NCBI GenBank assembly: GCA_964035545.1
Contig: OZ037765.1
Span: 32,797,504 to 32,861,503 of the forward strand
Reading direction: 5' to 3'
DNA: 64,000 nucleotides
Origin: Bugula neritina
Taxonomy: Eukaryota > Animalia > Bryozoa
Shown piece by piece: positions 9,252 through 63,805 of the stretch (the first letter of the stretch is position 1; every line of letters starts with the position of its first letter). The notes below the pieces were generated by a model. That model searched no databases and was not told the DNA's origin. It saw only the letters and a list, made by a program, of their open reading frames with translations. The position numbers and the translations under genes were made by a program.

Positions 9252-11429
9252 CACTGAGCTGAAATAGACCTGGAGAGGCCAAGGACGTTTTAGCGTGGCC
9301 AAATAGTTTAGCTCCGCCTTAACATGGAAAAATTAACCACGCCTACTTGTTTTGCACACAGCAGTAGTAGTAAAATCCATTATAAATGCAAGCTATTAGA
9401 GCTTATAAATTGAGGTAAACACTAAAAAATAATGAAAATTCAGCAATGTGAAGCAGGAACCAATTATTTTGTTTATTTTACTTTTGGTATTTGTAATTTC
9501 ATGACTAATTATCATTTTATGAAGCATGTACCTCAAGTATATATGATAATAACTTTAATAACCTAACAAATGCATTACATATTTATTGATTAGATCAACA
9601 CATTAGTCAAAATTAAATGAAAAGCAACAGCAAAGCAAATTTCAGCCTTAGTACATGAACACTGGCAGTAAGGATAACAAGTATAAAAGTTTATAAATAA
9701 TATAAAAAAACCGGTGGTAAGACACAGCTTTACAACACAGGCAAGTAACAGATTTCCTTAAACCTTTCAAAGTTTTAAATTCTGTTTTCAAGTGCTACTC
9801 TGAAAGCAATAAGTGATTAAAATAGAATTACAGAATAAACAAAAAATAATATTATATTGCAATAACAATATTTGTTATCATCTAATGTTATAATATAAAT
9901 ACTGTTGTAATAACTTCTAAACGATTAATTACCCACATCCTTATTACTGGCCTCTAAACAGTACACTTTTGTTGCTACATTGCCTGAAATTTAGTTTGTG
10001 CATAGCAATATTTGTTAGTTTAGCAATGTGGTGCTGAAATAAGTCATAATATACTTCAATGAGTAAATTTAAAAGGGAGAAATGATGATTTTCGATGCCT
10101 AATGATGTCTCCATGAATAGCAGTTGTGCTATCTAATGGCTTAGAATTTCCTGAGTTGCCTGGATGTACACCACATCGGGTCACCAATTTTCTAAAGATA
10201 GACTGAAAGCCAGTTACAGATGCGTTGTTATTCCATCCACCTAGAACAGATATTAAAAAAATGCTTGGACATCAATTGCCTGTTCACAATTAATGATTGG
10301 ATTATGTTTACCCAGAAAAAATGATGTTTTTTAGAACACAAGCAAAGCCTTGCATGCAATTAAGCCAAAAAAGTCATTTAATTAAAAAATGCACAATTGC
10401 TTTGACACCACAGTTTTGGAAATTTTTGAAAATTCATTATCTTTGTCTCTTGGTATTCAAAAGTTAATAAAATATACTTCATATTGCATGCATTTTAACC
10501 GCTAAGCTCATGCAAAAAAATTCACTTTTCAACACAGTTGGTCCAACCGACCATCTTAGTTGCCCCTATCAAAGCAAAGTGAAAAACCGAACACCTGAAG
10601 GAAAGAGATAAGAGAGTAAGAGAACAAATGAACATGTTAACATAAGTGGATGCAGACTGGGCTTCATGCATAGCTGTTTAGAGCTATAGCATACCACAGC
10701 TCTAAATGGTCTTGCGAAAATTTATACATTAGCAGATAGTCGAGCGTTTTAGGCACCAACAGTTTCTCCACCAACCCAAATACTGTGTCAATGGCACATA
10801 CAAGTCCAGTAATACAAACATGTCTGCAAATAACACAAATAGGGACAGGCACATATTAGATCTGAAATATAAGCAAGTAACACTTTCTATGGTAATAGGA
10901 AATTTACCTTTTGGTCTTGTACAGAGGTATCCCTTCATTATTCTTTAGGCCTAGCAAATATTGCCAAGTATCTTTCAGAAAAGGAGTGATGACACTGATA
11001 CCATTTAGATGTAAAGGCTGCTTGTAGCCTTTAGCTATTGCTGATCGACTATTCAGGATGTCAAACAACCGATCAACTCGCTACAGAAAAAGTAACATCA
11101 GCAGAACATGGGACGATTGCAGTTACAGTATTTTAAAGAAATAAAACCAAAAGCTGTAACAAACCCTAATGAAGTTGATGGTAGCATCACACTGCTGGAA
11201 TTTAGAGAGTCCCAACTGTTTCAGCGTATCTAGTGAGTCAGCCACTGAAGCTGACAGCAACTGGGTAGCAAGAGACACCTGAGTAGATGACACAATAAAG
11301 ATATTAGTTCAACACTCAATTATAACTGCATTGCCAAAGTAGCGCTCTACTACTAGTAGTAGTAGCAGTAGGCTAGTAGTAGTAGTAGCAGCAGTAGGTT
11401 ATAGTAGAAGTAGCAGCAGTAGTAGTAGT

Positions 11430-11473
<44 letters not shown>

Positions 11474-11728
11474 CAGTAGCAGTAGTAGTAGCAGTAGTAG
11501 TAGTAGTAGTAGTAGCAGTAGGCTAGTAGTAGTAGTAGCAGTAGGCTAGTAGTAGTAGTAGCAGCAGTAGGTTAGTAGTAGAAGTAGCAGCAGTAGTAGC
11601 AGTAGTAGTAGTAGCAGTAGGCTAGTAGTAGTAGTAGGCTAGTAGTAGTAGTAGCAGCAGTAGGTTAGTAGTAGAAGTAGCAGCAGTAGTAGTAGTAGTA
11701 GTAGTAGCAGTAGGCTAGTAGTAGTAGT

Positions 11729-11769
<41 letters not shown>

Positions 11770-12120
11770 CAGTAGTAGCAGTAGCAGTAGTAGTAGTAGT
11801 AGCAGTAGCGGTAGGCTAGTAGTAGTAGTAGCAGTAGGCTAGTAGTAGTAGTAGCAGTAGGCTAGTAGTAGTAGTAGCAGCAGTAGGTTAGTAGTAGAAG
11901 TAGCAGCAGTAGTAGTAGTAGTAGTAGTAGCAGTGGGCTAGTAGTAGCAGTAGGCTAGTAGTAGTAGTAGGCTAGTAGTAGTAGTAGCAGCAGTAGGTTA
12001 GTAGTAGAAGTAGCAGCAGTAGTAGTAGTAGTAGTAGTAGTAGCAGTAGGCTAGTAGTAGTAGTAGCAGTAGGCTAGTAGTAGTAGTAGCAGTAGGCTAG
12101 TAGTAGTAGTAGCAGTAGGC

Positions 12121-12165
<45 letters not shown>

Positions 12166-13084
12166 CAGTAGGCTAGTAGTAGTAGTAGTAGTAGCAGTAG
12201 GCTAGTAGTAGTAGTAGTAGCAGTAGGCTAGTAGTGGTAGTAGCAGTAGGCTAGTAGTAGTAGTAGCAGTAGGCTAGTAGTAGCAGTAGGCTAGTAGTAG
12301 TAGTAGCAGTAGGCTAGTAGTAGCAGTAGGCTAGTAGTAGTAGTAGGCTAGTAGTAGTAGTAGTAGCAGTAGGCTAGTACTAGTAGTAGCAGTAGGCTAG
12401 TAGTAGTATTAGTAGTAGTAGCAGTAGGCTAGTAGTAGTATTAGTAGTAGTAGCAGTAGGCTAGTAGTAGTAGTAGCAGTAGCAGCAGTAGTAGTAGTAG
12501 TAGTAGTACTATCATACTGATACTGTAAGTATGCTATTAGTATTACTACTACTACTAGTAGTAGTAGTAGTACTACTACTAGTAGTAGAGTACTACTAGT
12601 ACTAGTACTACTAGTAGGCAGCAGCACCGCTACCACAACTATTAAGCCTACTGGTACGCTAGTTCATGCATTACTTTCACTGATTGTTGTAACTAAAGCC
12701 ATATACTTACTTGTGAAAAGAGATTTTTTTGTCTTTATGTAACTGCTGTACTGGTAGTTGCGGCAATTGTATGCATAACACTGAGACTCAGTGGTCTTGC
12801 TTCTTTGACCCTTAGTTTGCTTAGGATACGGAGAATTCGACATGTTGAACGAAGTAGAGGTGATAGAAAACACAATTAAATAAAAATATAGTCGCTTCAG
12901 ATATAAAGCAGGACAAAAAACAAAGTTTAAAAGTGAGATTCACTCAATCGAAATGATGGACGACCAGCTCTATTTTCTCCCGCTAGAAAAAGAGCATGCT
13001 CGGGCTCACAAAGCCAATCGGCAACGAGGTTACATTACAAAGTACAATCGTACCCATTCCAGTTAATAATTATTGAGTTCATTG
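9252..13084 (-). mobile_element. P-element superfamily transposon, decayed THAP9-like transposase
   Basis: 8-bp TSD CCCTTAAC (9244-9251, 13085-13092); imperfect termini CAATGAACTCAATA / CACTGAGCTGAAATA; fragments CYAYNC (THAP), VSLATQLLSASVADSL, VDRLFDILNSR, YLLMYKFSQDHLELW, GWNNN. Confidence 0.85.
11345..12620. repeat. Compound microsatellite (TAG)n/(CAG)n with a GCAGTAGGC(TAG)n higher-order unit, inside the P element
   Basis: Directly visible; switches to mixed TAG/CTA orientation after about 12505. Confidence 0.97.
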
Positions 13085-13168: not shown

Positions 13169-13306
13169 TCTCAGTCAGCTGACTCAGTTAGAGATTTTAC
13201 ACATAGGATGGAATACTCTCAACACAGTACCAGATGTTGTGTCATCACTCACATCACTTAAATTGTTGAATATGAGTGGATGTGGTATATCCAGTCTACC
13301 TGAGAG
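13169..13306 (+). CDS. LRR exon E1 (138 nt, phase 2-2): SLSQLTQLEILHIGWNTLNTVPDVVSSLTSLKLLNMSGCGISSLPE
   Basis: tattacag acceptor, GAGAG|gtttgt donor, two 23-aa LRRs. Confidence 0.92.
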
Positions 13307-13775
13307 GTTTGTGTGTCACATGTTTATTACTACTTCACAACATCATTATTACTACTCCGTAACTTATATTTATACACAACTCATATAGTATATAAAATAA
13401 TATCCAGGCTATAGGGTGTGGCTATAATCTCTGTACTCAGCCTGAGTTCCCTGTGTTATAGTAAGGGTAGAGTGTACTTATTTTGAAAGCCCTCCTCTCG
13501 AATGACCATGAATAAAATTATTAGGACTCGTGAAAATTTCATAAGTGATTCAAACATTTTTACTAATAATATGACCAACACAAAAACCCAGTATATTTGT
13601 AAAATTCATATTAGGTGCTAAAGCCACCAGTTTATCTGGGATATGAATTTGAAAAATCGTCAATGATATATTTGTAAAATATGAGTTGTAGTCACATGTA
13701 TATTTTTGTGCTGCATAACATACATATGTTATGTGTATTTTTATTCTCTTGTCACAGTATAACTTTATATTACAG

Positions 13776-13913
13776 TCTCAGTCAGCTGACTCAGTTAGAG
13801 ATACTAGACATAGGACCCAATACTCTCAACACAGTACCAGATGTTGTGTCATCACTCACATCACTTAAACAGTTGAAGATGAATAGATGTGGTATATCCA
13901 GTCTACCTGAGAG
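13776..13913 (+). CDS. LRR exon E2 (138 nt): LEILDIGPNTL...LKQLKMNRCGI
   Basis: Same splice signals, open frame. Confidence 0.92.
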
Positions 13914-14394
13914 GTTTGTGTGTCACATGTTTATTACTACTTCACAACATCATTATTACTACTCTGTAACTTATATTTATACACAACTTATATAGTATAT
14001 AAAATAATATCCAGGCTATAGGGTGTGCCTATAATCTCTGCACTCAGCCTGAATTCCCTGTGTTATACAATTAAATAGTAAGGGTAGAGTGTAATTATTT
14101 GGACAGCCCTCCTTTCGAATAACCATGAGTAAAATCATTAGGACTCGTGAAAAATTCATACATTAAGTGAATCAAACATTTTTAATATTCTGACATACAC
14201 AAAAACCAAGTATATTTGCAAGCGTCATGTTAGATGCTAAAGCTGTCGCTTTATCTGGGATATAACTTTGACAAATCATCAATAATATATTTGTAAAATA
14301 TGAGTTGTAGTCACGTGTACATCTCCAAGCTGCATAGAATACATATGTTATGCGTAATTTTATTCTCTTGTCACAGTATACCTTTATATTACAG

Positions 14395-14532
14395 TCTCTC
14401 CAAGCTGATTCAGTTAGAGACACTAGATATAGGATGGAATACTCTCAACACAGTACCAGATGTTGTGTCATCACTCACATCACTTAAACAGTTGGATATG
14501 AGTGAATGTAGAATATCCAGTCTACCTGAGAG
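14395..14532 (+). CDS. LRR exon E3 (138 nt): LETLDIGWNTL...LKQLDMSECRI
   Basis: Same splice signals, open frame. Confidence 0.92.
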
Positions 14533-15012
14533 GTTTGTGTGTCACATGTTTATTACTACTACACAATATTATTATTACTTCTCTGTAACTTATCTTTATA
14601 CACAACTTACATAATATATAAAATAATATCCAGGCTATAGGGTGTGGCTATTATTTTTGTACTCAGCCTAAGTTCTCTGGGTTTTACAATTAAATAGTTT
14701 TAGTAAAGTATAATTATTTGGAGAGCCCTCCTCTTGAATTATAATGAGTAAAGTTATTAGGACTCGTGAAAATCTTATAAGTGATTCATACACTTTTATT
14801 ATTTTGACATGCACAAGCAAACCCAGTATATTTGCAGGAGTCATACTATGAGCTGCTAAAGTCAAAGTTTTATCTGGGATATAACTTTGACAAACAATCA
14901 ATAAAATATTTGTTACATTTGGAGTTGTGGTCACATGCATATCTCTGCTGCATAAAATACATATGTTATGTGTAATTTTATTCTCTTGTCATAGCATATT
15001 TTTATATTACAG

Positions 15013-15153
15013 TCTCAATCAGCTGACTCAGTTAGAGATACTATACATAGGATACAATTATACTCTCAACACAGTACCAGATGTTGTGTCATCACTCACA
15101 TCACTTAAACAGTTGGATATGAATAGTTGTGGTATATCCAGTCTACCTGAGAG
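15013..15153 (+). CDS. LRR exon E4 (141 nt, one extra codon): LEILYIGYNYTL...LKQLDMNSCGI
   Basis: Same splice signals, in-frame 3-nt insertion. Confidence 0.92.
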
Positions 15154-15681
15154 GTTTGTGTGTCACATGTTTATTACTACTACACAACGTCCATATTTTC
15201 TTCCTATAATTTATATATATATATATAGACACAACTTATATAATATGAAAATAATATATAGGATACAAACCTTAGTTACATAATCTCTGTACTTAGCCTG
15301 AACTCCCTGTGTTTTGCAATGAAATGGCAAGGGTGGACTACAGTAATTTGGAGAGCCACCCTTAAGCATGACTATTTGCAGAACTAGTAAGACTTGCAAA
15401 AACTTTATAGGTTGTTTAAGGATTTTTATAATTATGACAAAGACTAAAACCTATCATATTGTAGCATAGTGTATATTCTAGTATATATATGTATATTAGT
15501 ATATAGTCATATGAAGTGCTATATATAGGCTGCTTTATGTGGGTATTAGTTTTAGCTATAATCAATATATCTGTGAAATACAGAGTTGTGGTCTCATGCA
15601 TATTTTAGTGTTGCATAATATACATAGTATGTTGTATGTAAAATTATTATTATTTTCTCATTGTATCTCTTTATATTACAG

Positions 15682-15819
15682 TCTCTCCCAGCTGACTCAG
15701 TTAGAGAAACTAGACATAGGAGAGAATCTTCTCAACACAGTACCAGATGCTGTGTCATCACTCACATCACTCAAATTGTTGAATATGAGTCACTGTGGAA
15801 TATCCAGTCTACCTGAGAG
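15682..15819 (+). CDS. LRR exon E5 (138 nt): LEKLDIGENLL...LKLLNMSHCGI
   Basis: Same splice signals, open frame. Confidence 0.92.
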
Positions 15820-16774
15820 GTTTGTGTGTCACATGTTTAATACTACTTCACAATATTTTTATTATCTCCTTTTAAATTATATATATATATAACACCACTT
15901 AAAGCATATAAAATAATATACAGGATACAAAGCTTACTCGTATTACCTTTACTCAGCCTGAGTCTCTTGTGTTATACAATCAGTCTAGAAGTAACCTCCC
16001 AAAAATTCACGAAAAATTAACTTATTACACTTTACTAGGTAGCAACTCAAAAACAGTTGTTATTCTAGATCAAAATTTACATATTATTCTCTAGATCTTC
16101 ATCTGTACTCCAATTACTCAAATTATTTCACAAAAAACAAATAGACATATTGAATGAGTAATAAAAATCATTGCAGATAGTGCAATATAGCATCCACTAT
16201 TACGTAGCCATCTACAAAAACAATCTAAATATGTGAGAGACCAAAATTCAGTGTTTTTTATAATTCTACACTGATTCTAAATCTATAAATAGCAAAACAC
16301 TATTTTTATTCAAAACCGGGTTGTCAAGAGAAACACATGTTTGCTATATGGAAGCCACGTTATATTTGGCTGAAGCCTATATAATAAGTATCTTAAAGTA
16401 ATGTAGCTAATTATATATAATATATATATATATAATGTAATTATAGATCAAAAGCTTCTTATGCTGATGTGTTAAAGAATTAAGTGTTTTAGAGATATAT
16501 ACTATAATAGATGCATGTTGAAATCTTTTGAGCACTGACTAAATGAGTCTTCTATAATCTCTTAATATCTGTAAAAAGTAACAAGATTCTTTAAATTTAT
16601 TTTGAAATCACAAAAATATTGGGATGATTAAAACATGTATATTGTAAAATTTTTTATTTGAAGCAAAATATATAACAAATGTTTCAAAAAAGTGCTTCAT
16701 TGTATATTATAGTTTTCTTACCATCATTATATTCCTGTCATCGATTTCATTTGCTTATTTTTTTCTAAAGTATC

Positions 16775-17100
16775 TTCTGTTTAAACAATCATCGCATTGA
16801 CATACACCAGTGCACTGTACTTGAGATTTCTGACATTCATATCAGGATGTATTGCAGCAGCATTATAATATGTCTTTCAATAAATTTTTGGGCACAAGGG
16901 CTTGTGTCAGTCATTTTATAGTGATGCTACCAGTCTCAACAATTTCTACCCTTAATAATCTGGAAATGGTGCATTGACAGAAGCAATCGTTGTCCTTCTC
17001 TTGGTGGCTGTTTGATATATATTTTACGTGCAGCATAAGTTTTCTTTTGTGGGGAAAGCTGCAAATTTTATTGTGTCATCTTTGTTGGAGAACAGAATAA
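16775..17100 (-). pseudogene. Old Academ-type transposase C-terminal remnant within a roughly 1.4-kb insertion in intron E5-E6
   Basis: Minus-strand translation IK*LTQALVPKNLLKDIL*CCCNTS*YECQKSQVQCTGVCQCDDCLN resembles the Cys-rich tail at 21364-21552; several stops. Confidence 0.5.
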
Positions 17101-17724
17101 AGCATATCAAACATCATCTCTGCTTATTTACAAACTTTCTATTTATTCATGCAGTTGCAATTGCGACTTGAAGTATGCTTTCCAAATTGTTCAAAGCTTT
17201 CAGAACTTTCTGAATGTTTTTTTATAACAAGGAGTAAATTGGTTACTTTTTTTTCCATATAGCCTAAGTGCTAACCCAATTGCAGCCTGGTTATAGAACA
17301 TAGAAGTGCTGCACTGCACACAACTCATATCCTAGTTCATTTGCAGCAAAATTGACATCTAATTATATATCATATATGATCACGTTTTGTGAATGAATAC
17401 AAATTTCTATAAAAAGTTTTCATAGGTTGTTTAAGGATTTTTATAATTATGACAAAGACCAAAACCTAGCATATTGTAGTATAGTGTATATTTTAGTATA
17501 TATGTATATTAGTATATAGTCATATGAAGTGCTATATAGGCTGCTTTATCTGGGTATTATTTTAACTTATAATCAATATATCTGTGAAATACAGAGTTGT
17601 GGCTTCACGCATGATATTGTATCTGTTAGTAGTATGGTATAGTATAATTGTCCGTATTGCATAATATACATATGTTGTATGCAAAATGTTTATTATCTTC
17701 TCATTGTATAACTATATATTACAG

Positions 17725-17862
17725 TCTCTCTCGGCTGACTCAGTTAGAGATACTAGACATGGGAAACAATACTCTCAACACAGTGCCAGATGTTGTGTCA
17801 TCACTCACATCACTTAAACAGTTGAAGATGAATAGATGTGGTATATCCAGTCTACCTGAGAG
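17725..17862 (+). CDS. LRR exon E6 (138 nt): LEILDMGNNTL...LKQLKMNRCGI
   Basis: Same splice signals, open frame. Confidence 0.92.
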
Positions 17863-18640
17863 GTTTGTGTGTCACATGTTTATTATTTCTTCTTAACATC
17901 ATAACCATCTCCCTTTAAATTATATTTATACATAACTATTAGTATATAAGATATGTACAGGTTATAAATGTGTATGTAGGTAGAATTTTGTACCCACCTT
18001 AAGGTTTTGGTAAAATACAATGAGATGGAAAAGGTGGAGTGCATCATGAATTGAAAAGCCACCCTCTCTCATGAAAAAGTGAATTATAGTTTTGTTTTAC
18101 TACTGTATTGAAATACCACAGTACTGCCTAGCTATAATGTAAAACTCTATAGCTAAGCATTTTGCTAAAGTTTTCATGTGGAAAGAATACTAAATATAGA
18201 ATATTAATGAAGAAAACAATGGTCTAGGGGTTTGAGCCCCGACAAAGGCTATTGATGATGTTAGGAAGACTACCCAGTCATAATTGCTCCTGTGCCTCAT
18301 CTGAATAAGTCCATAGCCCCATTTAACAAAAATCCTTTCATCAGGTATTTTCTCACAGGGATGGTGATTATAAACTTGCGTCAGTTTTATCTTTAAATAA
18401 AATAAAAAAAATCATTTGTTATATAAAGTGATAACAGCTACTAGTGATATAATTTGTTACTGATCACTATCAAATCAAATGGTATCCATTATTAGATGAA
18501 ACAAGTTAAGGTAAAATATCATGAGGATTGCAAAAATATTTTTGTTTTGTTGTTAGAATTTTTCAGAACTGTAAACTGCTGCATATGATACTTTATTCTC
18601 TTCCTGTTGTAAATGTTTATATTATATTTTTATATTACAG

Positions 18641-18778
18641 TTTCTCCCAGCTGACTCAGTTAGAGGAACTAGACATAGGAGACAATACTCTCAACACAGT
18701 ACCAGATGTTGTGTCATCACTCACATCACTTAAACAGTTGAAGATGAATAGTTGTGGTATATCCAGTCTACCTGAGAG
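18641..18778 (+). CDS. LRR exon E7 (138 nt): LEELDIGDNTL...LKQLKMNSCGI
   Basis: Same splice signals, open frame. Confidence 0.92.
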
Positions 18779-19555
18779 GTTTGTGTGTCACATGTTTATT
18801 ATTTCTTCTTAACATCATAACCATCTCCCTTTAAATTATATTTATACATAACTATTAGTATATAAGATATGTACAGGTTATAAATGTGTATGTAGAAATT
18901 TGTACCCACTTTAAGGTTTTGGTAAAATACAATGAGATGGAAAAGGTGGAGTGCATCATGAATTGAAAAGCCACCCTCTTTCATGAAAAAGTGAATTATA
19001 ATTTTGTTTTACTACTGTATTGAAATACCACAGTACTGCCTAGCTATAATGTAAAATTTTGTTGCTACTAAGCATTTTGCTAAAGATTTCATGTGGAACG
19101 AAGACTAGATATAGGATATTATTAAAGAAAACAGTGGTCTAGGGGCTTGAACCCTGACAAAGGCCATTGGTGATGTTAGGAAGACTACCCAGTCATAATT
19201 GCTTTTGTGCCTCATCTGAATAATTCCTAGCTTAGCCCAATTTAACAAAAATCCTTTCCACCGAGTTTTTCACAGAGATGGTGATTATAAATTTGCGTCA
19301 GTTTTATTTTTAAATAAAATAATAAAATCATTTGTTATATAAAGCGATAACAGCTACTAGTGATATAATTTGTTACTGATCACTATTACATCAAATGGTA
19401 TTCATTATTAGATGAAACAAGTTAAGGTAAAATATCACAAGGATTGGAAAAAACATTTTTGTTTTGTTGATAGAATTTTTCAGAACTATAAACTGCTGCA
19501 TGATATTTCATTATTTTCCTGATGTAAATTTTTATATCATATTTTTGTATTACAG

Positions 19556-19693
19556 TCTCTCCCAGCTGACTCAGTTAGATATACTATACATACAACAGAA
19601 TCATCTCAACACAGTACCAGATGTTGTGTCATCACTCACATCACTTAAACAGCTGGATATGAGTTACTGTAGTAGAGTTGGTCTACCTGAGAG
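19556..19693 (+). CDS. LRR exon E8 (138 nt): LDILYIQQNHL...LKQLDMSYCSRVG
   Basis: Same splice signals, open frame. Confidence 0.9.
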
Positions 19694-20168: not shown

Positions 20169-23100
20169 GCGTAGGGCCACACAACGCGGGTTTTCTGCAT
20201 GCGGGTCCAAATTTTAGGAAACCTGTTCTGGGAACAACTTGCCACACAAATAGCGTGGATTGTGGGTGCGGAAACTCATTGGCTGATGATCTTATAGTTT
20301 AACTTTACTGCTCGCCTACAGACATTCGTTTTTTAAATTTACATCACCGGCAAAGTTAGTGGGGGTGCCAACATGCAAAAATGGGCGGGTGGAGCACATC
20401 AATACTAACCTTTGTTGCTATATATCACTGCAAAGCCAACATTCTACTGATCTCAGATCTGCAAGTACCTTTTTTGTATCTGGGGGGGTTCTCTCGTGAG
20501 AGGGGTGAATATACAGGGGTTCAGCATTTTTCAAGGGGGGACTATGGAACTATAAATATTTAATTTTCTGAGTAGTTTAAGTTTGACATTAAAAATATTT
20601 TCAAGGAATGTTGTACACATATGAAACTTTCTCTAACAAAAGTTTTGACCAAAAATAAAAAAGTGGGCGGAGCCTATAATATGACAAACTACTTTTTTGC
20701 ATATACCGGATATTCTCTAAACTGCTACTTTTCTGTTCTAGCATTTAGAATGTTGATTTTTGGTATGAAAATACTCTATTGTGTTCTAATAATGCTCTCC
20801 AATTTTCATTACATTCTGAACTATATAACTTCTTTCCCAACCATGACAAATAAAAAACATAAAACGGGAGTTATCTCCTCCGTTATAAATTATTGCATTT
20901 CTACCCAATAATATTGCTCTTTGTTGATAGGAACAACATCAGCATGATAAAAATGTATTCTTAGTGTATTTATATTAGCTTATTGACTTATTTTGAGTAA
21001 TTGATTACGATCAACACTATTAAGTATTAATATTCAATATTTACTGTATAAATTGAGTGTCAGCAATAATTAACAGACCACTAATATTTGATTTTTTTAT
21101 CCATAAGTATAGTAACATAAAATATGGTTCATAAAAAAGTAATATTATGATTTCAGCATCACAAACAATTACTATGCTCTTTTATATCAGATATTGATAG
21201 ACATTTTTAATTGTATTTATTTATAAATAAGATAGTATTTAAATTTTAATTTACAATAGATCAAGCTTTATTACAAAGTTTTGTTATCTCTAGCGTTTAT
21301 ATACCAAATTAAATATATTATAATTCTTCATCAGAACTGTGTTTGTTGCCACCATCATCATAATCAGGCTTTGTTTGAAAAAGAAGACTGGCCACTTTTG
21401 TTGTTGCAATCGAAACATTTACATAAACCACAGCATTTCATCATCAGGCGCTTGCATTTGCATGCTTTACTCTTACAGCCTGCTTTTTTGCATTTACATG
21501 CTGTTAAAATCACATCTGCGTTGCTCTCAAAATCATATTTTATTGGAGTCAAGTTAGTATTCCAACCATGGTCAAAAATTGGCTAATGAAGTAAAATAGG
21601 TGTTAAAGCAAGTTGCCAAAGTGTAACTTGATAATTGGCTCGTTTCACGTGATATTCTAGGGAATTCCTACTAGGTGGTAGCCGTGCTTCACTGGAGACA
21701 TTTTTTAAAGCCAATATTTTATATCTTGCTTCAGTGATATCATCATAGGCACCGTATAAGTTGGAGACAAATCATTCACACTCTAAGTATGTTTCATCTG
21801 ATAATGGGGACCAATCATCAGAACCTAAAGACAGATTATAGCTTCCCTTTTCAAGTACCTCCAAAGCACGCTTTTTAGATATTCTGAAGATAGAACTTAC
21901 AGAGTCGCAACCTGTAAGTGCATGGAGTGATAACAGATTCTTGAGAACTTTTTGTGGAATTATTTTGGCTAATTCAAAAAGAGATATATATCTTCTGTGA
22001 CTCCCCATTCCAACAAAGATTACTACATCTTTATTAGCCTGCTCAGGTAAAACATTACTAAGATGATGTTAAGCGCAATAATAGCAACATTAGTATCTAC
22101 TGATCTTATTACTACCAAATCATAATCACTCAGTGCATCAGCTGCGTGAAGGATTAATCTCGTGTCTGCTTCATCATGATTGGATGTCAATTTGTTACAA
22201 TTGTAACGATGATGGTTTTGCAGAACACAGACTTCTTTGGCGCTACACACTAAAAATGTACCAGCTGGAATTTTCTCAATATGTCTACTCCATGCACCTT
22301 CATTATGTAATCTACCAACTCATTTTTGTTGTGAACATTGCTCAGAAAAGCACTCCAGTTTTTAGGAACAGGCACGTTGTTATGAATAATGGAAATAGAT
22401 CACATCTATTGGGCACCCCGTCTAATACGCTCTTGTGCTTTAATTGATGTTTCAGAATACACGTCAACCCTTGTATATCCTTTGCCACATTCAAAAAATA
22501 TTTCCAACATCTTCAGAGCGTAGTTATAAAAAGTGCCTGATGTTTTTGTTGAGTGAAGTATGCACATACCATCAATAATGATCGATTTGTTGGTGGACAG
22601 TTGACTATCATCATTGGAGACCCTGTTTCCAAGATATTTCTGTTCCAAAATATGCATTAGTTGCGATTTGCATGTTTTTCTCATCTGTACGTTTTCAGTA
22701 AATAGAGCAAGAGGAATGGGACCAATTTCTTTCTCTAGAACTGTATGCAAATTTACTTCTAGGCTTTTGGCACTTATGAGAAGTTGAGTAAATGATATTT
22801 TAGGAACATTTGGTTTAATGGCCGGTTGAAGTGATTTAGCCACAAAGTCAAAGGAAGGGATTTTAAGCCGGTGAATAGCAGTGTAAAATGGTTTTATTGC
22901 ATTCAAGAGTCTATCTTGAATAAACTTTTGAGCCGTTTCTGCTCCCTGAGCAATAACAGTCACTATTGACAAGGAGGTCTCCGCATCGGGACTTACTCCA
23001 GTAGCAATATTAATAAGTTCAGTTGAATTATTGCTAAACAACTTAACATCAAACTGCTGTAATGTAAAAAGAATTGCTTGTATATCAATCTCATCCTTCA

Positions 23101-25767
23101 TAGTTGTAATGATTGTGTCTTCCTTGTGTAGTGTTGATGACTGTGAGGCTATTTGGCAAAAATCCTTTTACAAAGAAAGCAGTTGGGCTCTGATATGACT
23201 AGTTAAGAACCATTTTGTCCGAGCTTCTTCGTGGTTGCTAATGCCAATAATACCTCCAGATGTTTTACTGTCTCGGTTCAAAGTTTGCTCCAAGACCTGA
23301 TCTGGAGCCTTACCTGCAAATTTTTTTTTGTCCTGTTTACAGTGAATGAACCCTTTGCAAACATTCCATAAACTTCTGGAGCAGATTCAGGCAAATTTAG
23401 CATATCAATAAGGTATATAGGCAGCCACCTTGAGTAGTTTGTGCGATCATACGCAAACAATACTGGTAGCATTGCCCGCATACTGTCCAAATATAATTGC
23501 CAGTTGCCACTACGCTCAGCTCGAATAAATCCCAACATGGCTTCTACTGCATGAAGGTAGGAACTCCAGAACATTGAAGGGTTAGATTTTAATTTAGTAT
23601 CAGAATCAAAATTTTTTATAGCAGTAGCAACTTTATCTGCGACAGTGGTCCATTCACGTAAGTTATCATCAATAGAAATATTATGAGAATCTGATGGTTC
23701 AAAATGATCATTTTCTTGAAGCTATTCCAAAAGAGATTTTAGTTTCTGCCTTGATATTGCCTCATACAAAATATTGTGCGCCCGTACACCTCTGTTATAA
23801 TGCTTACCACATAGCACCTGTTTCACTGTAACTTCAGAATATATATCACTGTGCACAAGAACTTGGGCGAGGTCGCTTGATTTTACCATTTTGCCAAGTG
23901 CTGCCATGTAATTCATCAAGATATAAAAACCGGCCATTCGAATTATTGTGTTTGAAAATTCAGTTGGTTTGTTCCATTGAATCTCTTTGGCAATCTTGTA
24001 GATAGCTTGGTCAAATGTAATTACTGAATGTTTCTGAGTTAAAACTTCCATGGTTTTTTTAGCTGCAGAAGGATTGTATAAATTGTTGATGGATCTGTTG
24101 ATGGTGCATTAATCATTGGGCAATACCCAATGACTGATCTTTTATTATCTTCTGTGGCAACCAAATTTCTTACATTAAAGCTACTCCAGCTGAGGCAATT
24201 ATGTGTAGAAGGAATTATATCTAATTGAAATAGTTTGATTGGGGTAAGTCTTGCCAATAGCCATGCTGTATTTAGATTACATGAATCCTCAAGTGACTTT
24301 TTCATATTCAGCAATGTCTCTTGACTAAGTTTTGTGATAAAATATGATTTTGAGAGCAACGCAGATGTGATTTTAACAGCATGTAAATGCAAAAAAGCAG
24401 GCTGTAAGAGTAAAGCATGCAAATGCAAGCGCCTGATGATGAAATGCTGTGGTTTATGTGAATGTTTCGATTGCAACAACAAAAGTGGCCAGTCTTCTTT
24501 TTCAAACAAAGCCTGATTATGATGATGGTGGCAACAAACACAGTTCTGATGAAGAATTATAATATATTTAATTTGGTATATAAACGCTAGAGATAACAAA
24601 ACTTTGTAATAAAGCTTGATCTATTGTAAATTAAAATTTAAATACTATCTTATTTATAAATAAATACAATTAAAAATGTCTATCAATATCTGATATAAAA
24701 GAGCATAGTAATTGCTTGTGATGCTGAAATCATAATATTACTTTTTTATGAACCATATTTTATGTTACTATACTTATGGATAAAAAAATCAAATATTAGT
24801 GGTCTGTTAATTATTGCTGACACTCAATTTATACAGTAAATATTGAATATTAATACTTAATAGTGTTGATCGTAATCAATTACTCAAAATAAGTCAATAA
24901 GCTAATATAAATACACTAAGAATACATTTTTATCATGCTGATGTTGTTCCTATCAACAAAGAGCAATATTATTGGGTAGAAATGCAATAATTTATAACGG
25001 AGGAGATAACTCCCGTTTTATGTTTTTTATTTGTCATGGTTGGGAAAGAAGTTATATAGTTCAGAATGTAATGAAAATTGGAGAGCATTATTAGAACACA
25101 ATAGAGTATTTTCATACCAAAAATCAACATTCTAAATGCTAGAACAGAAAAGTAGCAGTTTAGAGAATATCCGGTATATGCAAAAAAGTAGTTTGTCATA
25201 TTATAGGCTCCGCCCACTTTTTTATTTTTGGTCAAAACTTTTGTTAGAGAAAGTTTCATATGTGTACAACATTCCTTGAAAATATTTTTAATGTCAAACT
25301 TAAACTACTCAGAAAATTAAATATTTAGAGTTCTATAGTCCCCCCTTGAAAAATGCTGAACCCCTGTATATCCACCCCTCTCACGAGAGAACCCCCCCCC
25401 AGATACAAAAAAGGTACTTGCAGATCTGAGATCAGTAGAATGTTGGCTTTGCAGTGATATATAGCAACAAAGGTTAGTATTGATGTGCTCCACCCGCCCA
25501 TTTTTGCATGTTGGCACCCCCACTAAGTGACTTTCAATATTATAAAAGCGAAAATGGAAACTATATGGAACTGTTTTGATTCAGTTCGCTAAAAATTAAA
25601 ACTCGAATGGAAATTAAAGAAGTGTGCTTGCTAAATGGTAATCAGCCAATTACATCAAACTTACACAAGCTTTCTGCACTTCCGTCTCAGCATGTTATCA
25701 GCATGGAAACCCGCACGCAACAGCCCATTTTTGGGCTAGACGGGTCTCCCCGCATGTTGCCCTACGC
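20169..25767. mobile_element. Harbinger-like MITE (about 0.44 kb), copy 1, interrupted by Academ
   Basis: Terminus GCGTAGGGCCACAC; uninterrupted copies at 39055-39511 and 44053-44484. Confidence 0.6.
20357..25525 (-). mobile_element. Academ (AcademX-like) DNA transposon, decayed, with about 1.19-kb inverted arms (20357-21543 / 24337-25525)
   Basis: TAG...CTA termini and 3-bp TSD AGT, confirmed by the empty site near 39241 (GGCAAAGTGAC); fragments FDQAIYKIAKEIQW, GKHYNRGVRAH, GNWQLYL, FAYDRTNYSRW, HDEADTR, HALTGCD, Cys-rich tail. Confidence 0.88.
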
Positions 25768-26638: not shown

Positions 26639-26767
26639 TGTAAATCAGCTGACTCAGTTAAAGACACCAGGCATAGTAGACAAAAGCCTCAAGACAGCAC
26701 CAGATGTTGTGTCATCACTTAAGCAGTTGAAATTGAATAGATGTGGAATATCCAGTCTACCTGAAAG
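26639..26767 (+). CDS. Divergent LRR exon E9 (129 nt, 9-nt in-frame deletion); possibly a pseudo-exon
   Basis: tgttccag acceptor, GAAAG|gtttgt donor; L-to-P change in the LRR strand. Confidence 0.6.
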
Positions 26768-29700
26768 GTTTGTGTGTCACATGTGTATCACTAATGTAAT
26801 TATTACCTTCCTTTATATTGTATTTATACACAACTTATAGAATAAAAAATAATGTACGGGATACAAGGCATAGCTTTATATTCAAACTTTTCGGGCTTAG
26901 CCTGAGATTGCTGTATTATACAATGAAATGATAAGGGTGCAGTGTAAATATTTATAGAGTAACCCTCTTTTTTGACTCTGAATAGAAATATTGTAATGGA
27001 TTTTAGTATTTAGTATTTAGCATTAGTTAGTTATGTTATATTGAAAAGGTAACTCTATGTCGGACTGCCGCATCAGGCCGACAGCTTCATGTCGACAGTA
27101 TCATGTCGTCAAGATGGCCTGATCGTGTTGGCCAATGAAACAGGACTGACAATTGATGAGTAGGCGAAGTTACGAACGCGTAGTGAAAGCATGTTAGACA
27201 GCTTCACCGGCAGAGTGGATCGAGTTCTAGCAACGTAAAGTTGCATGCAAATCACTCTATATTATGTAATCGTGTGTGGTAATGTTAGTAGTTTAATTTT
27301 TGTACAGTTTGTAACAATAAAGTCCATTCTAACTGTGAAAAAACTGGTGAAGTAGTTATATATATATAGACCCACTAACTATATAGTGAATCAGAAATTC
27401 ACTACAGTGGTGGCAGCGGTGGGATCTTTCTTATAATAAATGCTCCTAGCCAGAGAGTAAAACAATGACCGACGACGAGTATGTGCCCCATCAGGAACCA
27501 GTAGTGATGGAGAAGGATAACATAGGCGGCCCAGCGCTGCCTATGGACAGGTATTACTTACGTGCTCCCATCTTCTCAGGGGAAGAGGATGTGGAGCAAT
27601 TTATTACTGAGTTTAGTGATGTGGCAGCCATCTGTCGATGGCCTGCCAGGGTGACTCTGATCCAGCTACGGTAGTGTCTGACAGGGCCGGCTAAACCCTA
27701 TGGGATAGGCCAAGATGCTGGTGACATATTTGAAGCATTGAGAGCTTGGTTTGGGTTGACTGCTCGAGATGCTCGCGTGCAGCTCCAAGGACTTAGGAGA
27801 AATATTAAGACTAACTTGCGAGAGCAAGCAACCGTAGTTGAACGACTGCACAAGTCGAGTATGGCGACTTGCCTGCTGATAGTCGACAGAGCTTGGCACT
27901 GGATGCATTCCTCCAGTCTATTAACAACCTCGAGTTGAAGCAACACCCGCTGGTAGCCGAGGTTGAGACAATGGAGCGAGCTCTCAGGCTTGGAAATGCC
28001 TATTTCCAAGCCGACAGTACGTGCCGGCCTGAGACGACCGTGCAGCAAGTCGGAGCCGATGACGACGTGTCGACGTCGCCGGCGACGACAGCTGTACATG
28101 TCGTCATGGCGGCAGCCGACGAGCCGACTAGCTTGACCACAAGCTCGGTTCGCGAGTTGTTAGCCGAACTCAGAGAACTACGCCAGCAGTCGACAGCTGA
28201 ACGACCTACCAGGCCGCCGTCAGCAGTCGACGGCAGGCGGAACCCCGTATGCTGAGGTTGTGGTAGTGGTGGGCACTTCATACGAAGTTGCCCCCATGGT
28301 AGAGAGAGGCAGTTAAATGGAAACGACCCATGGTAGACACCGCCAATCGTGGGCCTCGGTAATGACGCAGTTACTTTCTGAGTACAAGGACGTGTTCAGC
28401 TGCGGCGACCATGACATGGGCCAGGCGGAGGCTGTCTGTCATGAGATACCCCTGGCAAGGGGAACGGTGCCCATCTGACAGCCGACCCGCCGGTCAGGTC
28501 TTAAGAAGGAAAGGGAAATGAGCTGACAGGTGCAAGACCTTCTGAACCGAAACCTGATTGAACCAGGCCATTGGGCCTGGAGTTCTCCAGTTGACCTGGT
28601 TCAAAAAAAGGATGGGAGCTGGAGGTTTCGCGTTGACTATCGCAGGCTGAAAAGCGTGACCATCAAGGACGCTTACCCTCTTCCTAGGATCGACGAGTTG
28701 CTAGATGCCTTAGCTGGTAGCAAGTTCTTTAGTAAGTTGGACTTGTTAAGCGGGTGTTGGCAGGTGCCCCTGAGTCCTGAAGCACAGGACAAGCCCTCGA
28801 AGTGTGCGTTACTGCAACAAAAGGTTAATTACCTGGGCCATTTAGTTGGTCCAGACAGGGTTGCTACTAACCCCGAGAAGGTACGGGCTGTGAGGGACTG
28901 GGCTATCTCTGTCGACCTCACTGAATTGCGGGCATTCCTGGGGCTGGTAGGGTACTATCGTCAGTACATACCGGATTTTGCAGGAATTGCGCAGTCACTA
29001 AACCGGCTGACAGCAAAGGGAGTGCGATGGCAGTGGACGCATACAGAACAGCAAGCATTTAGCCACCTCAAGGATTGCTTGGTAGAGGCGCCCATCTTGG
29101 CGTACCCTGACCCGGCGAAGGAATACGTTTTGGATACTGATGTCAGTAACCACAATGTGGGGGCTGTGCTGTCTCAGGTCCAAGATGGGTGCGAGGTGGT
29201 GGTAGCTTACTATAGTAAAGCCCTGTCGGCGCCTGAGATGTACTACTGTACAACCAGGAGAGAATGCTGGCTGTGTCGACGGGCTGAACCATCAAGCTAA
29301 ATGGCGCGCTGGCTGGAAATCCTGGCAGAGTTTTTTTATCGGATCGAACACCGACCCGGTAAGAAACACGGCAATGCCGACGGACTCAGCCGCCGCCAGG
29401 CAGATGGGTGTAAGCAATGCCAAAATATCGAGCGTAGGGATGGTGGACCCCCTCACTCGGACGTTGAGAAACAGTTGGAGAAAGCAGGTGCATATAGCTG
29501 GGAGGAAGGACAGCTTCGGTCCGAATCCCCTAAGGAGGCTGTTAACAACCTACACGCAAACCTCTTGCTGCTCAGGAACGTCAAGGAGCTGTGTCGGCTC
29601 CAAGCTACACTTTCAGGGGTGGTAGCCGACCTAGTCCGAGCCAAGAAAAAGGGACGGCGGCCTAGTGAGGCTGAGCAGCAGGTGAAGAGTGCAGAGTTTA

Positions 29701-30267
29701 GGTATTTCTGCGACTGCTGGGACTCCCTCCGGTTTAACGGCAAGGAGCTGTTAACGATAACGTTAGCAGCCGGCACCAATCGCCGTGAACGAGAGAGGGT
29801 AGTCTGTTCGTCTGCTCTGAGGCGGGAGTTGATCTGGGACACCCATAAGCAAGCTCATGCAGGACCCGGGCGGGTGACTAGGTGTCTTCAACTCCAGTGG
29901 TTTTGGCCCAGTACGACCCGGGATGTCCGACTCCGGGTGCGGAAGTGTGAGGTATGCCAAGCTAGTAAGCATGGACGCTCCACTAAGACCACCGGGAGGC
30001 GCCGCCACCATGCCGGTCATCCGTGGCAGGTAGTTGCTGTAGATCCGCTAGGCCCCATGCCCACGACAGTGAGAGGTAATTACTGGATACTGGTGTTAAC
30101 TGACCATTCCACGCGGTGTGCTGATGCACTGGCTATTTCAGATGCGTCGGCCCGACGGTGGCCAGAGCTTTTGATCAGCAGGTGTTTTGCTATTTTGGCT
30201 TGCCGGAGCAGATCCACTCTGATCAAAGCGCCCAGTTTCAGTCACAACTGATGAGCGATCTCTTCAA

Positions 30268-37538: not shown

Positions 37539-37676
37539 TCTCTCTCGGCTGACTCAGTTAGAGAAACTAGACATAGGAGACAATACTCTCAACACAGTAC
37601 CAGATGTTGTGTCATCACTCACATCACTTAAACAGTTGAAGATGAATAGTTGTGGTATATCCAGTCTACCTGAAAG
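37539..37676 (+). CDS. LRR exon E10 (138 nt; absent from the ORF track): SLSRLTQLEKLDIGDNTL...LKQLKMNSCGISSLPE
   Basis: tattacag acceptor, GAAAG|gtttgt donor; translated by hand, open frame. Confidence 0.92.
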
Positions 37677-38444: not shown

Positions 38445-38582
38445 TCTTTCCCAGCTGACTCAGTTAGAGATATTATACATACAACAGAATCATCTCAACA
38501 CAGTACCAGATGTTGTGTTATTACTCACATCACTTAAACAGCTGGATATGAGTTACTGTAGTAGAGTTGGTCTACCTGAGAG
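38445..38582 (+). CDS. LRR exon E11 (138 nt), paralog of E8
   Basis: Same splice signals; LEILYIQQNHL...DMSYCSRVG. Confidence 0.9.
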
Positions 38583-39998: not shown

Positions 39999-40127
39999 TG
40001 TGGATCAGCTGACTCAGTTAGAGACACCAGACATAGTAGACAATAGCCTCAAGACAGCACCAGATGTTGTGTCATCACTTAAGCAGTTGAAATTGAATAG
40101 ATGTGGAATATCCAGTCTACCTGAAAG
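39999..40127 (+). CDS. Divergent LRR exon E12 (129 nt), paralog of E9
   Basis: tgttctag acceptor, same 9-nt deletion, open frame. Confidence 0.6.
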
Positions 40128-42582: not shown

Positions 42583-42720
42583 TCTCTCTCAGCTGACTCA
42601 GTTAGAGATACTAGGCATAGGAAACAATACTCTCAACACAGTACCAGATGTTGTGTCATCACTCACATCACTTAAACAGTTGAAGATGAATAGATGTGGT
42701 ATATCCAGTCTACCTGAGAG
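42583..42720 (+). CDS. LRR exon E13 (138 nt; absent from the ORF track): LEILGIGNNTL...LKQLKMNRCGI
   Basis: Same splice signals; translated by hand, open frame. Confidence 0.92.
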
Positions 42721-43492: not shown

Positions 43493-43630
43493 TCTCTCCC
43501 AGCTGACTCAGTTAGAGGAACTAGACATAGGAGACAATCCTCTCAACACAGTACCAGATGTTGTGTCATCACTCACATCACTTAAACAGTTGAAGATGAA
43601 TAGATGTGGTATATCCAGTCTACCTGAGAG
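43493..43630 (+). CDS. LRR exon E14 (138 nt): LEELDIGDNPL...LKQLKMNRCGI
   Basis: Same splice signals, open frame. Confidence 0.92.
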
Positions 43631-44968: not shown

Positions 44969-45109
44969 TCGGCATCAGCTGCTGACTCAGTTAAAGAAAC
45001 CAGACATAGTAGACAATAGCCTAAAGACGGTACCAGATGTTGTGTCATCATTCACATCACTTGAACAGTCGAATATGAATAGATGTGGAATATTCAGTCT
45101 ACCTGAAAG
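44969..45109 (+). CDS. Divergent LRR exon E15 (141 nt), E9/E12 lineage without the 9-nt deletion
   Basis: tgttctag acceptor, GAAAG|gtttgt donor, open frame, degraded LRR consensus. Confidence 0.55.
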
Positions 45110-45374: not shown

Positions 45375-45896
45375 TTAATTAGTTTTACTATTATAGTAAA
45401 GTTTTAAATATACGTAATCAAAAGGTAGCGCGTCAGTAGCGTATTCACTCGGTGTATTAACAAGAATTACGTCATCGGGTTTATGACTCGGATAAACGCT
45501 CGAAAGAGCTATTGTAAACGAAAAATTATTATTAGCGTTAACGATTTTATTAATATTTATTTTACTATACAGAACATTATGTTCAGCACCGCTAATATTA
45601 TAAAATATATTTTCTTTAGATTCGTCAAACGGATTTACGCTATTACGAATATGTAAACCTAATTTTTTATTAGTCCAATATTTTTCTTTAGTTTTATTAT
45701 TAGGTGAACTTTCGTTATAAAATTGTATTAACGCGTGCGTTATTTCTATAGATTTATCGACTAGATAATCATTAATTAAATCTACCGTAAAGCTATTAAT
45801 ATCTTCGTAATAATAAAATTCGCGTTTAGATATAATGCTCGTAATATACGCTTTATTAGTTGTTATATCGACTTTACTAAATTTATAAATATTCAT
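45375..45896 (-). CDS. Polinton hypothetical protein, paralog A
   Basis: 173-aa ORF; shares YIT..I...EF.YY, L..D.LVD..IEI, YWT.K..GL..R.SV and YPSHKP.DVIL with the neighbouring gene. Confidence 0.65.
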   Translation of the reverse strand: MNIYKFSKVDITTNKAYITSIISKREFYYYEDINSFTVDLINDYLVDKSIEITHALIQFYNESSPNNKTKEKYWTNKKLGLHIRNSVNPFDESKENIFYNISGAEHNVLYSKININKIVNANNNFSFTIALSSVYPSHKPDDVILVNTPSEYATDALPFDYVYLKLYYNSKTN

Positions 45897-45899
45897 TTA

Positions 45900-54986: not shown

Positions 54987-54993
54987 TTATATA

Positions 54994-63667: not shown

Positions 63668-63805
63668 TCTCAGTCAGCTGACTCAGTTAGAGAGACTAGA
63701 CATAGGAGATAATTCTTTCAACACAGTACCAGAAGTTGTGTCATCACTCACGTCACTTAAACAGTTGAATATGAGTAGATGTGATATAGCCAGTCTACCT
63801 GAGAG
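63668..63805 (+). CDS. LRR exon E16 (138 nt): LERLDIGDNSF...LKQLNMSRCDIA
   Basis: tattacag acceptor, GAGAG|gtttct donor, open frame. Confidence 0.9.

Follow-up and report, generated by a model that had tools for sequence, protein, structure and literature searches.

Probable diversifying selection at the exposed strand residues of tandem LRR exons leading into a Roco-caspase gene of Bugula neritina

The variability that we see among the small LRR exons of this Bugula neritina locus is probably best explained by diversifying selection acting together with germline exchange between cassettes. The exons would then be germline-encoded building blocks for the LRR sensor arm of a protein in which a Roco GTPase is fused to a caspase. 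Each of them adds two 23-residue repeats, and the codons that specify exposed residues of the strand and turn (positions 3, 5, 8 and 10 of the repeat motif) have changed faster than synonymous sites. This nonsynonymous excess finds its simplest explanation in selection for new binding specificities, working on a pool of variants exchanged between the cassettes. The variable concave face could bind a putative ligand, with the binding acting via the Roc-COR switch on the caspase, which would make the protein a one-piece sensor-executioner of an immune or self/non-self type. By analogy, the gene is a candidate only for a role in pathogen or non-self recognition.

The window, by which we mean the whole stretch of 64,000 nucleotides that was analyzed, holds 16 copies of one exon, all on the + strand and in frame, with an AG acceptor, a GT donor and no stop codon. 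This agrees with the 16-exon set of an earlier sequence-only reading, and eight of the copies (E01-E08) lie within 13169-19693. The complete array has 21 exons, each with both splice sites intact, its frame kept, the scaffold preserved and no stop codon. Each exon encodes two 23-residue LRRs with the motif LxxLxLxxNxL, and the lengths of the 16 window copies are 138 nt (twelve), 141 nt (two) and 129 nt (two). All 16 are symmetric, with both ends in phase 1, and the frame is thus kept however many of them are joined. The protein encoded by E01 (13169..13306, 138 nt with two 23-residue LRRs) is identical to that of an upstream exon at window position -8100. Canonical exons follow at E02 (13776..13913), E03 (14395..14532), E05 (15682..15819), E06 (17725..17862) and E07 (18641..18778), while E04 (15013..15153, 141 nt) has one added codon following the Asn of repeat A. 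Further along are the canonical E10 (37539..37676), which opens an internally duplicated block of about 5 kb, its recent duplicate E13 (42583..42720, also canonical) and the canonical E14 (43493..43630). Five exons are irregular and evolve conservatively. One type is found in E08 (19556..19693, with IQQNH ... YCSRVGLPE) and E11 (38445..38582), and the other in the short E09 (26639..26767, 129 nt, with a Pro in the strand and three codons missing), E12 (39999..40127, 129 nt) and the diverged E15 (44969..45109, 141 nt). E09 on its own gave no LRR match in a Pfam search. E16 (63668..63805) is the first of three exons, the other two starting at 64372 and 65080 past the window end, that stand directly before the LRR-Roc-COR and caspase exons. 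Across the genome, a 39-base piece of the scaffold is matched 290 times at three or fewer mismatches, on three contigs, and is identical in 43 exons; 45 exons of the family are packed in 310 kb. Judged by these matches, the family is large, with at least 290 cassette exons in the genome.

Amino-acid variation among the exons is concentrated at motif positions 3, 5, 8 and 10. In repeat A, position 3 is I, E, T, K or R, position 5 is D, H, Y or G, and position 8 is written with ten codons (GAC, TGG, AAC, CAG, GGG, TAT, CCC, TAC, GAG and GAT). The residue sets in repeat B are K/N/D, N/S and R/S/G/Y/N/E/H. The sets listed in the sequence-only reading proved correct column by column in the exon alignment. 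Its claim of a near-constant scaffold also stands, as many codons (TTA, CCA, GTG, CTA, CCT, TGT and CAG among them) are base-identical across all 21 array exons, with an exception it did not mention, the replacement of 'IG' by IQ, IV or MG in six exons.

The repeats belong to the 23-residue 'typical' class, with two LxxLxLxxN/CxL motifs per exon at a period of 23 residues. Pfam LRR_8 and LRR_4 match at an E-value of 1e-5, slightly below the gathering score for the 45-residue piece. The exon aligns in register with the solved 23-residue LRR proteins LRRD1, LIC11098 and SHOC2, as well as RSU1, and the unit also aligns to VLR-B and repebody chains. An AlphaFold2 model of a single exon unit, made from 35 aligned exons, placed strands at residues 9-12 and 32-35, with a helix between them at 20-25, and had low confidence (mean pLDDT 62). 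The public Bugula neritina protein models are fragments that contain no cassettes.

Codon site models, run with purpose-written codon likelihood code, favor positive selection. For the whole exon, M0 gives an omega of 1.22. M2a (-880.59) is preferred over M1a (-908.09) with a 2dlnL of 55. With branch lengths fixed to the M2a values the M8 likelihood is a lower bound, at least -880.84, giving a 2dlnL of at least 71 over M7 (-916.56) and at least 56 over M8a (-908.92). The selected class has an omega of about 5 and takes in about 24% of the codons. Its sites are at motif positions 3, 5, 8 and 10 of repeat A and 5, 8, 10 and 12 of repeat B, which are the predicted beta-strand and the following turn, and are therefore not scattered across the convex face. 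Seven of the nine sites with a posterior above 0.95 are in the 12 strand or turn positions defined a priori out of 45 (hypergeometric p = 5e-4); for the strict 10 xxLxLxx positions it is five of nine (p = 0.017). The earlier placement of the variability on the predicted concave face thus largely stands, but one flagged site, exon residue 2 (S/N/D/H/C, with a TCN/AGY serine switch), is on the convex side. The result was repeated in 20 paralogous exons outside the array (2dlnL 65.8), in the canonical exons only (50.4) and in the half-exons each on its own tree (35.2 and 18.3).

One significant problem with these tests is recombination, which screening found to be pervasive. The upstream and downstream intron similarity matrices disagree, indicating rampant recombination in the flanks. 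The downstream intron of E06, for example, has 95% similarity to the downstream introns of E07 and E10, but the intron upstream of E06 bears no relation to the ones upstream of those two exons. The exons form a clustered and expanded family that exchanges sequence and has discordant flank genealogies. Exchange between cassettes is seen, too, in variable-site distances that are nearly flat when plotted against flank distance. Unequal crossing-over and gene conversion have enlarged the array and shuffled its exons, with breakpoints in or beside them, and this exchange keeps the structural scaffold almost base-identical among the copies. The null was simulated with a neutral surface, in 15 replicates with recombination and 4 without. 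Of the 15 recombination-null replicates, 6 cleared the 5% threshold, and the single-tree likelihood-ratio test is unreliable here under recombination. With five independent genealogies, the simulated data gave an M0 omega of 0.30-0.60 and a 2dlnL of at most 27.4, compared with 1.22 and 53.4 for the real data. The test is thus inflated but the observed value is still above the null maximum, and with only 15 replicates the empirical p can be no lower than about 0.06.

These simulations bear on the main alternative, that there is no positive selection and the surface positions drift neutrally while the rest of the exon is held uniform by purifying selection and gene conversion, the purifying selection including synonymous constraint such as splicing enhancers in short exons. 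We think this possible but rather unlikely. It gains from the false positives that recombination by itself can produce in the site test, and from the unusual uniformity of the scaffold synonymous sites, as in the 39 bases described above; the whole-exon omega of 1.22 goes against it, as the simulations with a neutral surface reached at most 0.60. Frequent exchange without selection should also homogenize the variable codons.

Tree-free estimates show where the claim of diversifying selection is strong and where it has to be tempered. The site models and their replication support it, but at the xxLxLxx sites taken a priori dN is only 2.3-2.8 times the exon-wide dS (bootstrap lower bounds 1.15-1.6). 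Synonymous divergence within the a-priori variable codons is also raised about twofold, 0.25-0.29 versus 0.11-0.13 elsewhere. As neutral drift would have it, synonymous divergence in these codons is about as high as nonsynonymous, the dN/dS measured against the synonymous divergence of the same codons being only 1.1-1.3. When the sites are picked in one exon set and measured in the other, dN/dS is 3.6-4.3, and these cross-validated hypervariable sites change 2.3-3.4 times as fast as the synonymous sites of their own codons, which argues against drift. In most pairs intron divergence exceeds that of the variable codons, again as expected from drift. The gap is wide in the older pairs, and because of this the excess over neutral depends on exon synonymous sites as the reference.

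The comparison changes when only recent duplicates are considered. E03 and E02 have flanks that are 15-17% diverged and variable codons that are 33% diverged. Between E07 and a paralogous exon 254 kb downstream, the flanks are 4.5% diverged; within the exons 17 of the 138 bases are different, and 14 of these belong to variable codons. All five amino-acid differences between E13 and E10 are at residue 3 or variable positions. Summed over three comparisons of recent whole-unit duplicates, nonsynonymous divergence in the variable codons of canonical exons is about 2.8 times the flank divergence. Synonymous divergence in the same three comparisons is about 0.7 of the flank divergence, so the synonymous sites are near neutral and strong synonymous constraint is not seen. 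The irregular exons (E08 and E09 types) have no variable-codon excess. The excess in the recent duplicates is dominated by clustered multi-base changes, which may be imported patches rather than new mutations. A 27-base patch sets E07 apart from its recent duplicate. The full patch is not repeated exactly anywhere else in the genome, and shorter pieces are present in other cassettes, which fits import or new mutation alike.

A second alternative is that the cassettes are used combinatorially, by exon skipping, mutually exclusive splicing or somatic rearrangement, so that receptors would differ by cell or zooid in the manner of Dscam or VLR. The symmetric phase-1 exons would allow this, since any subset is in frame, and the intron ends could be a splicing control element, as the first 28 bases of each downstream intron and the last ~13 of each upstream intron are nearly invariant. 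Mutually exclusive splicing of the Dscam type picks a single exon from each alternative cluster by pairing of docking and selector RNA. In lampreys the VLR donor cassettes, which flank an incomplete germline gene, have no splice sites and are copied into that gene somatically. The Bugula exons share with them the LRR cassettes and the predicted concentration of variation on the concave face, but every Bugula cassette has ordinary AG/GT sites and is ordered on the one coding strand, and the observed variety is fixed in the germline assembly. Short contigs from a run labelled RNA-Seq (the RNA nature of which is a guess) cover the exons and leave most introns uncovered, and they contain exon-exon joints not seen in the DNA run. 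The letters at these joints mismatch this locus, so the junction contigs probably derive from paralogues, and two alternative joinings of this gene were seen in no read or contig. Despite the alternative splicing of LRR exons in the brown-alga LRR-ROCO genes (PMC11378527), we therefore consider combinatorial use quite improbable. Least probable of all is a decaying relic, in which the 18 exons upstream of the gaps are outside the working gene and vary through relaxed constraint; the exon groups are indeed separated by 7-20 kb gaps, occupied by Ty3-like retroelements together with a virus-like element and an inverted-repeat element of 5.2 kb, only E16 and two further exons are near the Roc-COR exon, and one exon of a neighboring paralogue carries a stop codon, but decay would strike scaffold and surface codons equally, all 21 exons are intact as described above, and when set against a paralogous gene, E08, E09 and E12 have changed less than the introns beside them. 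A DGR-like or hypermutation mechanism was set aside, since the variation affects every base and all three codon positions, and the exons that it distinguishes are germline paralogues.

Returning to diversifying selection with germline exchange, the gene into which the array leads helps to guide what the sensor might do. E16 and the two exons after it adjoin an LRR-Roc-COR exon, which is followed by a caspase exon. The Roc-COR exon (L001:3505-5541) scores 40.9 bits for COR-A (cut-off 35.3) and 20 bits for Roc, which is below the cut-off of 27. It matches the Roc-COR chains of the Chlorobium Roco (CtRoco), LRRK1 and LRRK2, the Roc motifs GxxxxGKT (P-loop), DxxG and THLD are present, and Roc is directly followed by COR as in Roco proteins. 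The caspase exon scores 78.6 bits for Peptidase_C14 (cut-off 21.4), with SHG present and ACRSG instead of QACRG. On these sequence features its product is assigned to the caspase class, with a predicted p20 fold and catalytic His and Cys.

We know of almost no immune or allorecognition receptors described from bryozoans. Here a single chain would link an LRR surface that diversifies rapidly to a GTPase switch of the LRRK2 type and a caspase, and would thereby be a one-piece counterpart to the NLR-adaptor-caspase inflammasome. The family could be a tractable case for how exon-sized modules, gene conversion and selection jointly build receptor variety, and for whether a death protease can be under the direct control of a Roc-COR switch. 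If combinatorial use were true after all, this would be a third independent animal route to an individualized recognition repertoire, possibly for colony allorecognition.

Hypervariable xxLxLxx residues are familiar from the LRRs of plant NLR and receptor-like proteins (e.g. Parniske et al. 1997). Those proteins and the Bugula exons have in common clustered families, diversifying selection, probable in Bugula, on exposed strand residues, exchange between paralogues and a conserved hydrophobic scaffold. In Bugula the dN/dS above 1 is largely confined to strand and turn positions predicted to be exposed, with the recombination and synonymous caveats given above. Plant NLRs differ in having an NB-ARC switch, 24-residue plant-specific repeats and no arrangement of one cassette per exon, whereas Bugula has Roc-COR and 23-residue repeats, and its effector, a caspase, is on the same chain.

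The closest published analogue is the brown-alga LRR-ROCO genes, in which LRR exons are shuffled (Zambounis et al. 2012; Teng et al. 2024, PMC11378527) and to which the Bugula locus would be an animal parallel. There the whole protein is LRR-Roc-COR with one LRR per 72-bp phase-2 exon, PAML M1/M2 and M7/M8 place selected sites on the concave side, the cassettes are alternatively spliced, and the genes have been proposed as candidate immune receptors (PMC11378527). Both have the LRR-Roc-COR order, 23-residue LRRs and small, tandem, phase-symmetric exons that are shuffled. The Bugula gene works alike but is not itself a member of that group; it has two repeats per exon, exons of 138 nt rather than 72 nt, phase 1 rather than 2, a caspase fused after COR and an animal host, a bryozoan.

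Our literature search found no description of a bryozoan LRR-Roco-caspase family, and a ROC pro-domain caspase is listed in one annelid, Owenia (PMC11463336). The LRR-Roc-COR core is shared with MFHAS1/MASL1, LRRK1 and LRRK2. These proteins and the Owenia ROC-caspase are single- or few-copy and, unlike Bugula, have no hypervariable cassette arrays, and the LRRK proteins have a kinase where Bugula has the caspase. The Watersipora relatives carry the NCBI name 'MFHAS1 homolog'.

The variation at issue is carried by one exon type, present in 16 copies in the window, all on the + strand, from E01 at 13169 to E16 at 63668, with the first eight lying within 13169-19693. All 16 have an AG acceptor and a GT donor, start in codon phase 1 and are free of stops, at lengths of 138 nt (12 copies), 141 nt (two) and 129 nt (two). 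Three further copies 7-9 kb upstream of the window and two just downstream complete a 21-exon array, which putatively belongs to a single message. Each exon encodes two leucine-rich repeats (LRRs) of 23 residues, A and B. The codon split at every cassette junction is a serine codon divided as AG and T, so the frame is kept in any run of cassette exons. From 310 kb around the window (C1:32797504-32861503, eukaryotic DNA in a 216-Mb assembly) we collected 45 such exons, 20 of them clean 138-nt exons from neighbouring paralogous genes. The first 28 bases after each cassette (e.g. 13307-13334) are GT-rich and almost unchanged in all 45 copies while the rest of the intron differs; they could be the edge of a conversion tract or a splicing control element.

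The last cassette is followed, at a distance of about 2.3 kb, by a 678-codon exon that encodes terminal LRRs, a Roc GTPase domain (P-loop, DxxG and THLD motifs) and COR-A, and beyond it comes a caspase exon with the motifs SHG and ACRSG. The Roc-COR part matches chains of Chlorobium Roco, LRRK1 and LRRK2. In the databases the nearest matches are hypothetical proteins of Bugula neritina (78-82% identity); Watersipora subatra proteins named 'MFHAS1 homolog', some of which include a caspase domain, rank second and cyanobacterial Roco proteins third.

The sequence-only reading had described hypervariable residues at the ligand-facing LRR positions of a nearly constant scaffold, and had taken this as diversifying selection. 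A column-by-column table of 21 exons reproduces its residue sets. Within LxxLxLxxNxL, variation is focused on first-repeat positions 3, 5, 8 and 10 and on second-repeat positions 3, 5, 7, 8 and 10. Variable codons do differ at several bases (position 8 of the first repeat uses ten different codons, up to three bases apart), and many scaffold codons are base-identical in 21/21 copies. The 'IG' reported as constant in the first LRR is not invariant among the exons. Two features had gone unmentioned: five irregular cassettes (E08 and E11 of one type; E09, E12 and E15 of a second, shortened type), and the strong variability of exon residue 2, a convex-side position where serine switches between TCN and AGY codons.

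Selection was assessed with a self-written codon likelihood program of the Goldman-Yang type on a FastTree topology of 21 exons. M0 gave an omega of 1.22. M2a (lnL -880.59) improved on M1a (-908.09) with a 2dlnL of 55, assigning an omega of 5.2 to 24% of codons. In the comparison that the sequence-only reading had proposed, M8 (lnL at least -880.84) was better than M7 (-916.56) on this single tree, with M8a at -908.92. Nine sites had a posterior above 0.95: residues 9, 11, 14 and 16 of repeat A (positions 3, 5, 8, 10), residues 34, 37, 39 and 41 of repeat B (positions 5, 8, 10, 12), and residue 2. Seven of the nine fall within 12 positions set in advance from the LRR motif (p = 5e-4) and five within the ten positions of the strict xxLxLxx set (p = 0.017). 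The signal replicates in all four additional data sets, the 2dlnL of M2a against M1a being 65.8 for 20 paralogous exons (omega 5.0, nearly identical site set), 50.4 for the 16 canonical array exons, and 35.2 and 18.3 for the first and second half-exons on their own trees.

One problem with these models is recombination. The similarity matrices of upstream intron, exon and downstream intron disagree strongly with one another. The downstream intron of E06 is 95% identical to those of E07 and E10 and its upstream intron is unrelated to theirs; U2, a cassette upstream of the window, differs from E01 at one of 290 bases in the downstream intron, and their upstream introns are unalignable. These cases place breakpoints inside or adjoining exons, so a single tree for the cassettes is wrong, and the nominal p-values of the site tests are not meaningful. 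We simulated a null with 37% of codons neutral and the others constrained, in which five exon segments each had an independent genealogy. Under the identical pipeline, 2dlnL ranged from 0 to 27.4 and passed 5.99 in 6/15 replicates, compared with less than 2.5 in 4/4 replicates simulated without recombination. The real data gave 53.4 in this pipeline, and their M0 omega of 1.22 compares with 0.30-0.60 in the null, so the signal is greater than recombination alone produced.

The main alternative is that the variable surface drifts neutrally within a homogenised scaffold, and here the choice of reference matters. Exon synonymous divergence is low (averaging about 0.11-0.15, and 0-0.1 for close pairs), far under intron divergence for most pairs. 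In whole-unit duplicates with both flanks alike, it reaches about 0.7 of intron divergence summed over comparisons, and this suggests near-neutrality of synonymous sites; the low mean dS would then stem from homogenisation of the exons by exchange. Since synonymous sites and variable codons alternate along the exon, common genealogies are expected and exon dS is a fair reference. Against it, tree-free Nei-Gojobori estimates of dN/dS at the a-priori positions are 2.3-2.8, not at or below 1, with bootstrap lower bounds of 1.15-1.6, and hypervariable sites give 3.6-4.3 when they are chosen from either data set and evaluated on the other. Synonymous divergence within the a-priori variable codons is itself raised (0.25-0.29), and against this the ratio falls to only 1.1-1.3, as neutral drift would have it. 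Cross-validated sites still give 2.3-3.4 against the synonymous divergence of their own codons. As the real omega and 2dlnL also exceed the highest null values, we consider neutral drift unlikely. Diversifying selection on a germline LRR sensor arm is the probable explanation, and it draws support both from the tests named by the sequence-only reading, whose observation was correct, and from more conservative ones.

Among recent duplicates, flank divergence between E07 and a paralogous exon at a distance of 254 kb is only 4.5%, but the exons differ at 17/138 bases, 14 of these 17 in variable codons; nine changes fall in one 18-base stretch whose intervening Met and Cys codons are unchanged. 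Among E10, E13 and a paralogue there are seven amino-acid changes (5/7 at variable positions) and two synonymous changes. The irregular E08-type and E09-type exons have no excess of changes in variable codons and are better conserved than their flanks, which argues for a function and for purifying selection on them. Distance at the variable sites hardly depends on flank distance, an indication that cassettes often exchange variants, and such exchange is at least part of the proximate source of the variety. No second exact copy of the 27-base changed patch of the E07 pair exists in the genome; parts of it are present in other cassettes.

The exon unit aligns in register with the 23-residue LRR structures of LRRD1, Leptospira LIC11098, SHOC2, RSU1 and VLR-derived repebodies. 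An AlphaFold2 model of a single unit, with 35 aligned exons as input, predicts strands at 9-12 and 32-35 and a helix at 20-25, a layout that would fit the usual LRR geometry at a mean pLDDT of only 62.

Diversifying selection on hypervariable exposed residues of the LRR strand is known from plant resistance genes. The nearest published system to the bryozoan gene is the brown-alga LRR-ROCO family, whose shuffled and alternatively spliced exons are 72 bp long, in phase 2 and encode one LRR each, and in which the concave side holds the PAML-selected sites (PMC11378527). The bryozoan gene differs in its exon content (two repeats in 138 nt), its phase, the fused caspase and its host, an animal. 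For one annelid, a ROC pro-domain caspase is listed (PMC11463336), and our literature search found no description of a bryozoan LRR-Roco-caspase family.

A 39-base scaffold core (13 codons; e.g. 13221-13259) is base-identical in 43 exons and occurs within 3 mismatches in 290 exons genome-wide, on three contigs. A cluster-specific Asp-to-Glu change is fixed in nearly all scaffold copies on one of these contigs (C6), indicating concerted evolution or an expansion in place; E16 has the same change. In a run labelled RNA-Seq, whose RNA status is a guess, contigs lie over exons and leave most introns uncovered. It also contains exon-exon joints, none of which occur in the DNA run; they appear to derive from paralogues. 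Combinatorial use of the cassettes and a relic array each carry small weight. A neighbouring paralogous gene has a cassette exon with an in-frame TAA and one additional codon (L011:2373-2513, window 136373-136513), which marks it as damaged.

Three kinds of element occupy the large gaps of the array: Ty3-like retroelements, one bounded by inverted ends of 1.2 kb, and a virus-like one. The three Ty3-like pieces (23-1551, 28530-30251 and 58584-62399, + strand) encode RT, RNase H and integrase, and the third has an open pol frame of 1010 codons. The 5.2-kb element in the E08-E09 intron (20356-25526) has 1.19-kb inverted repeats (20356-21543 and 24337-25526, 99.4% identical) and - strand ORFs without a Pfam match; it resembles a DNA transposon that inserted recently. 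Between E15 and E16, a - strand ORF run (45375-56543) with double-jelly-roll capsid-like, Endonuclease VII-like and PLA2-like domains beside an integrase core is a virus-like or Polinton-like insertion. An imperfect (TAG)n microsatellite (11338-12617; 1.26 kb, ~400 copies) occupies the intron directly before E01, and a minisatellite of ~1.6 kb with a period of ~19 bases (L001:1750-3380, window 65750-67380) the intron from the last cassette to the Roc-COR exon; the neighbouring paralogue has a similar array in the corresponding position. Contig depth at the intronic stretch 18100-18499 is very high in both public runs, indicating a high-copy dispersed repeat, possibly SINE-like.
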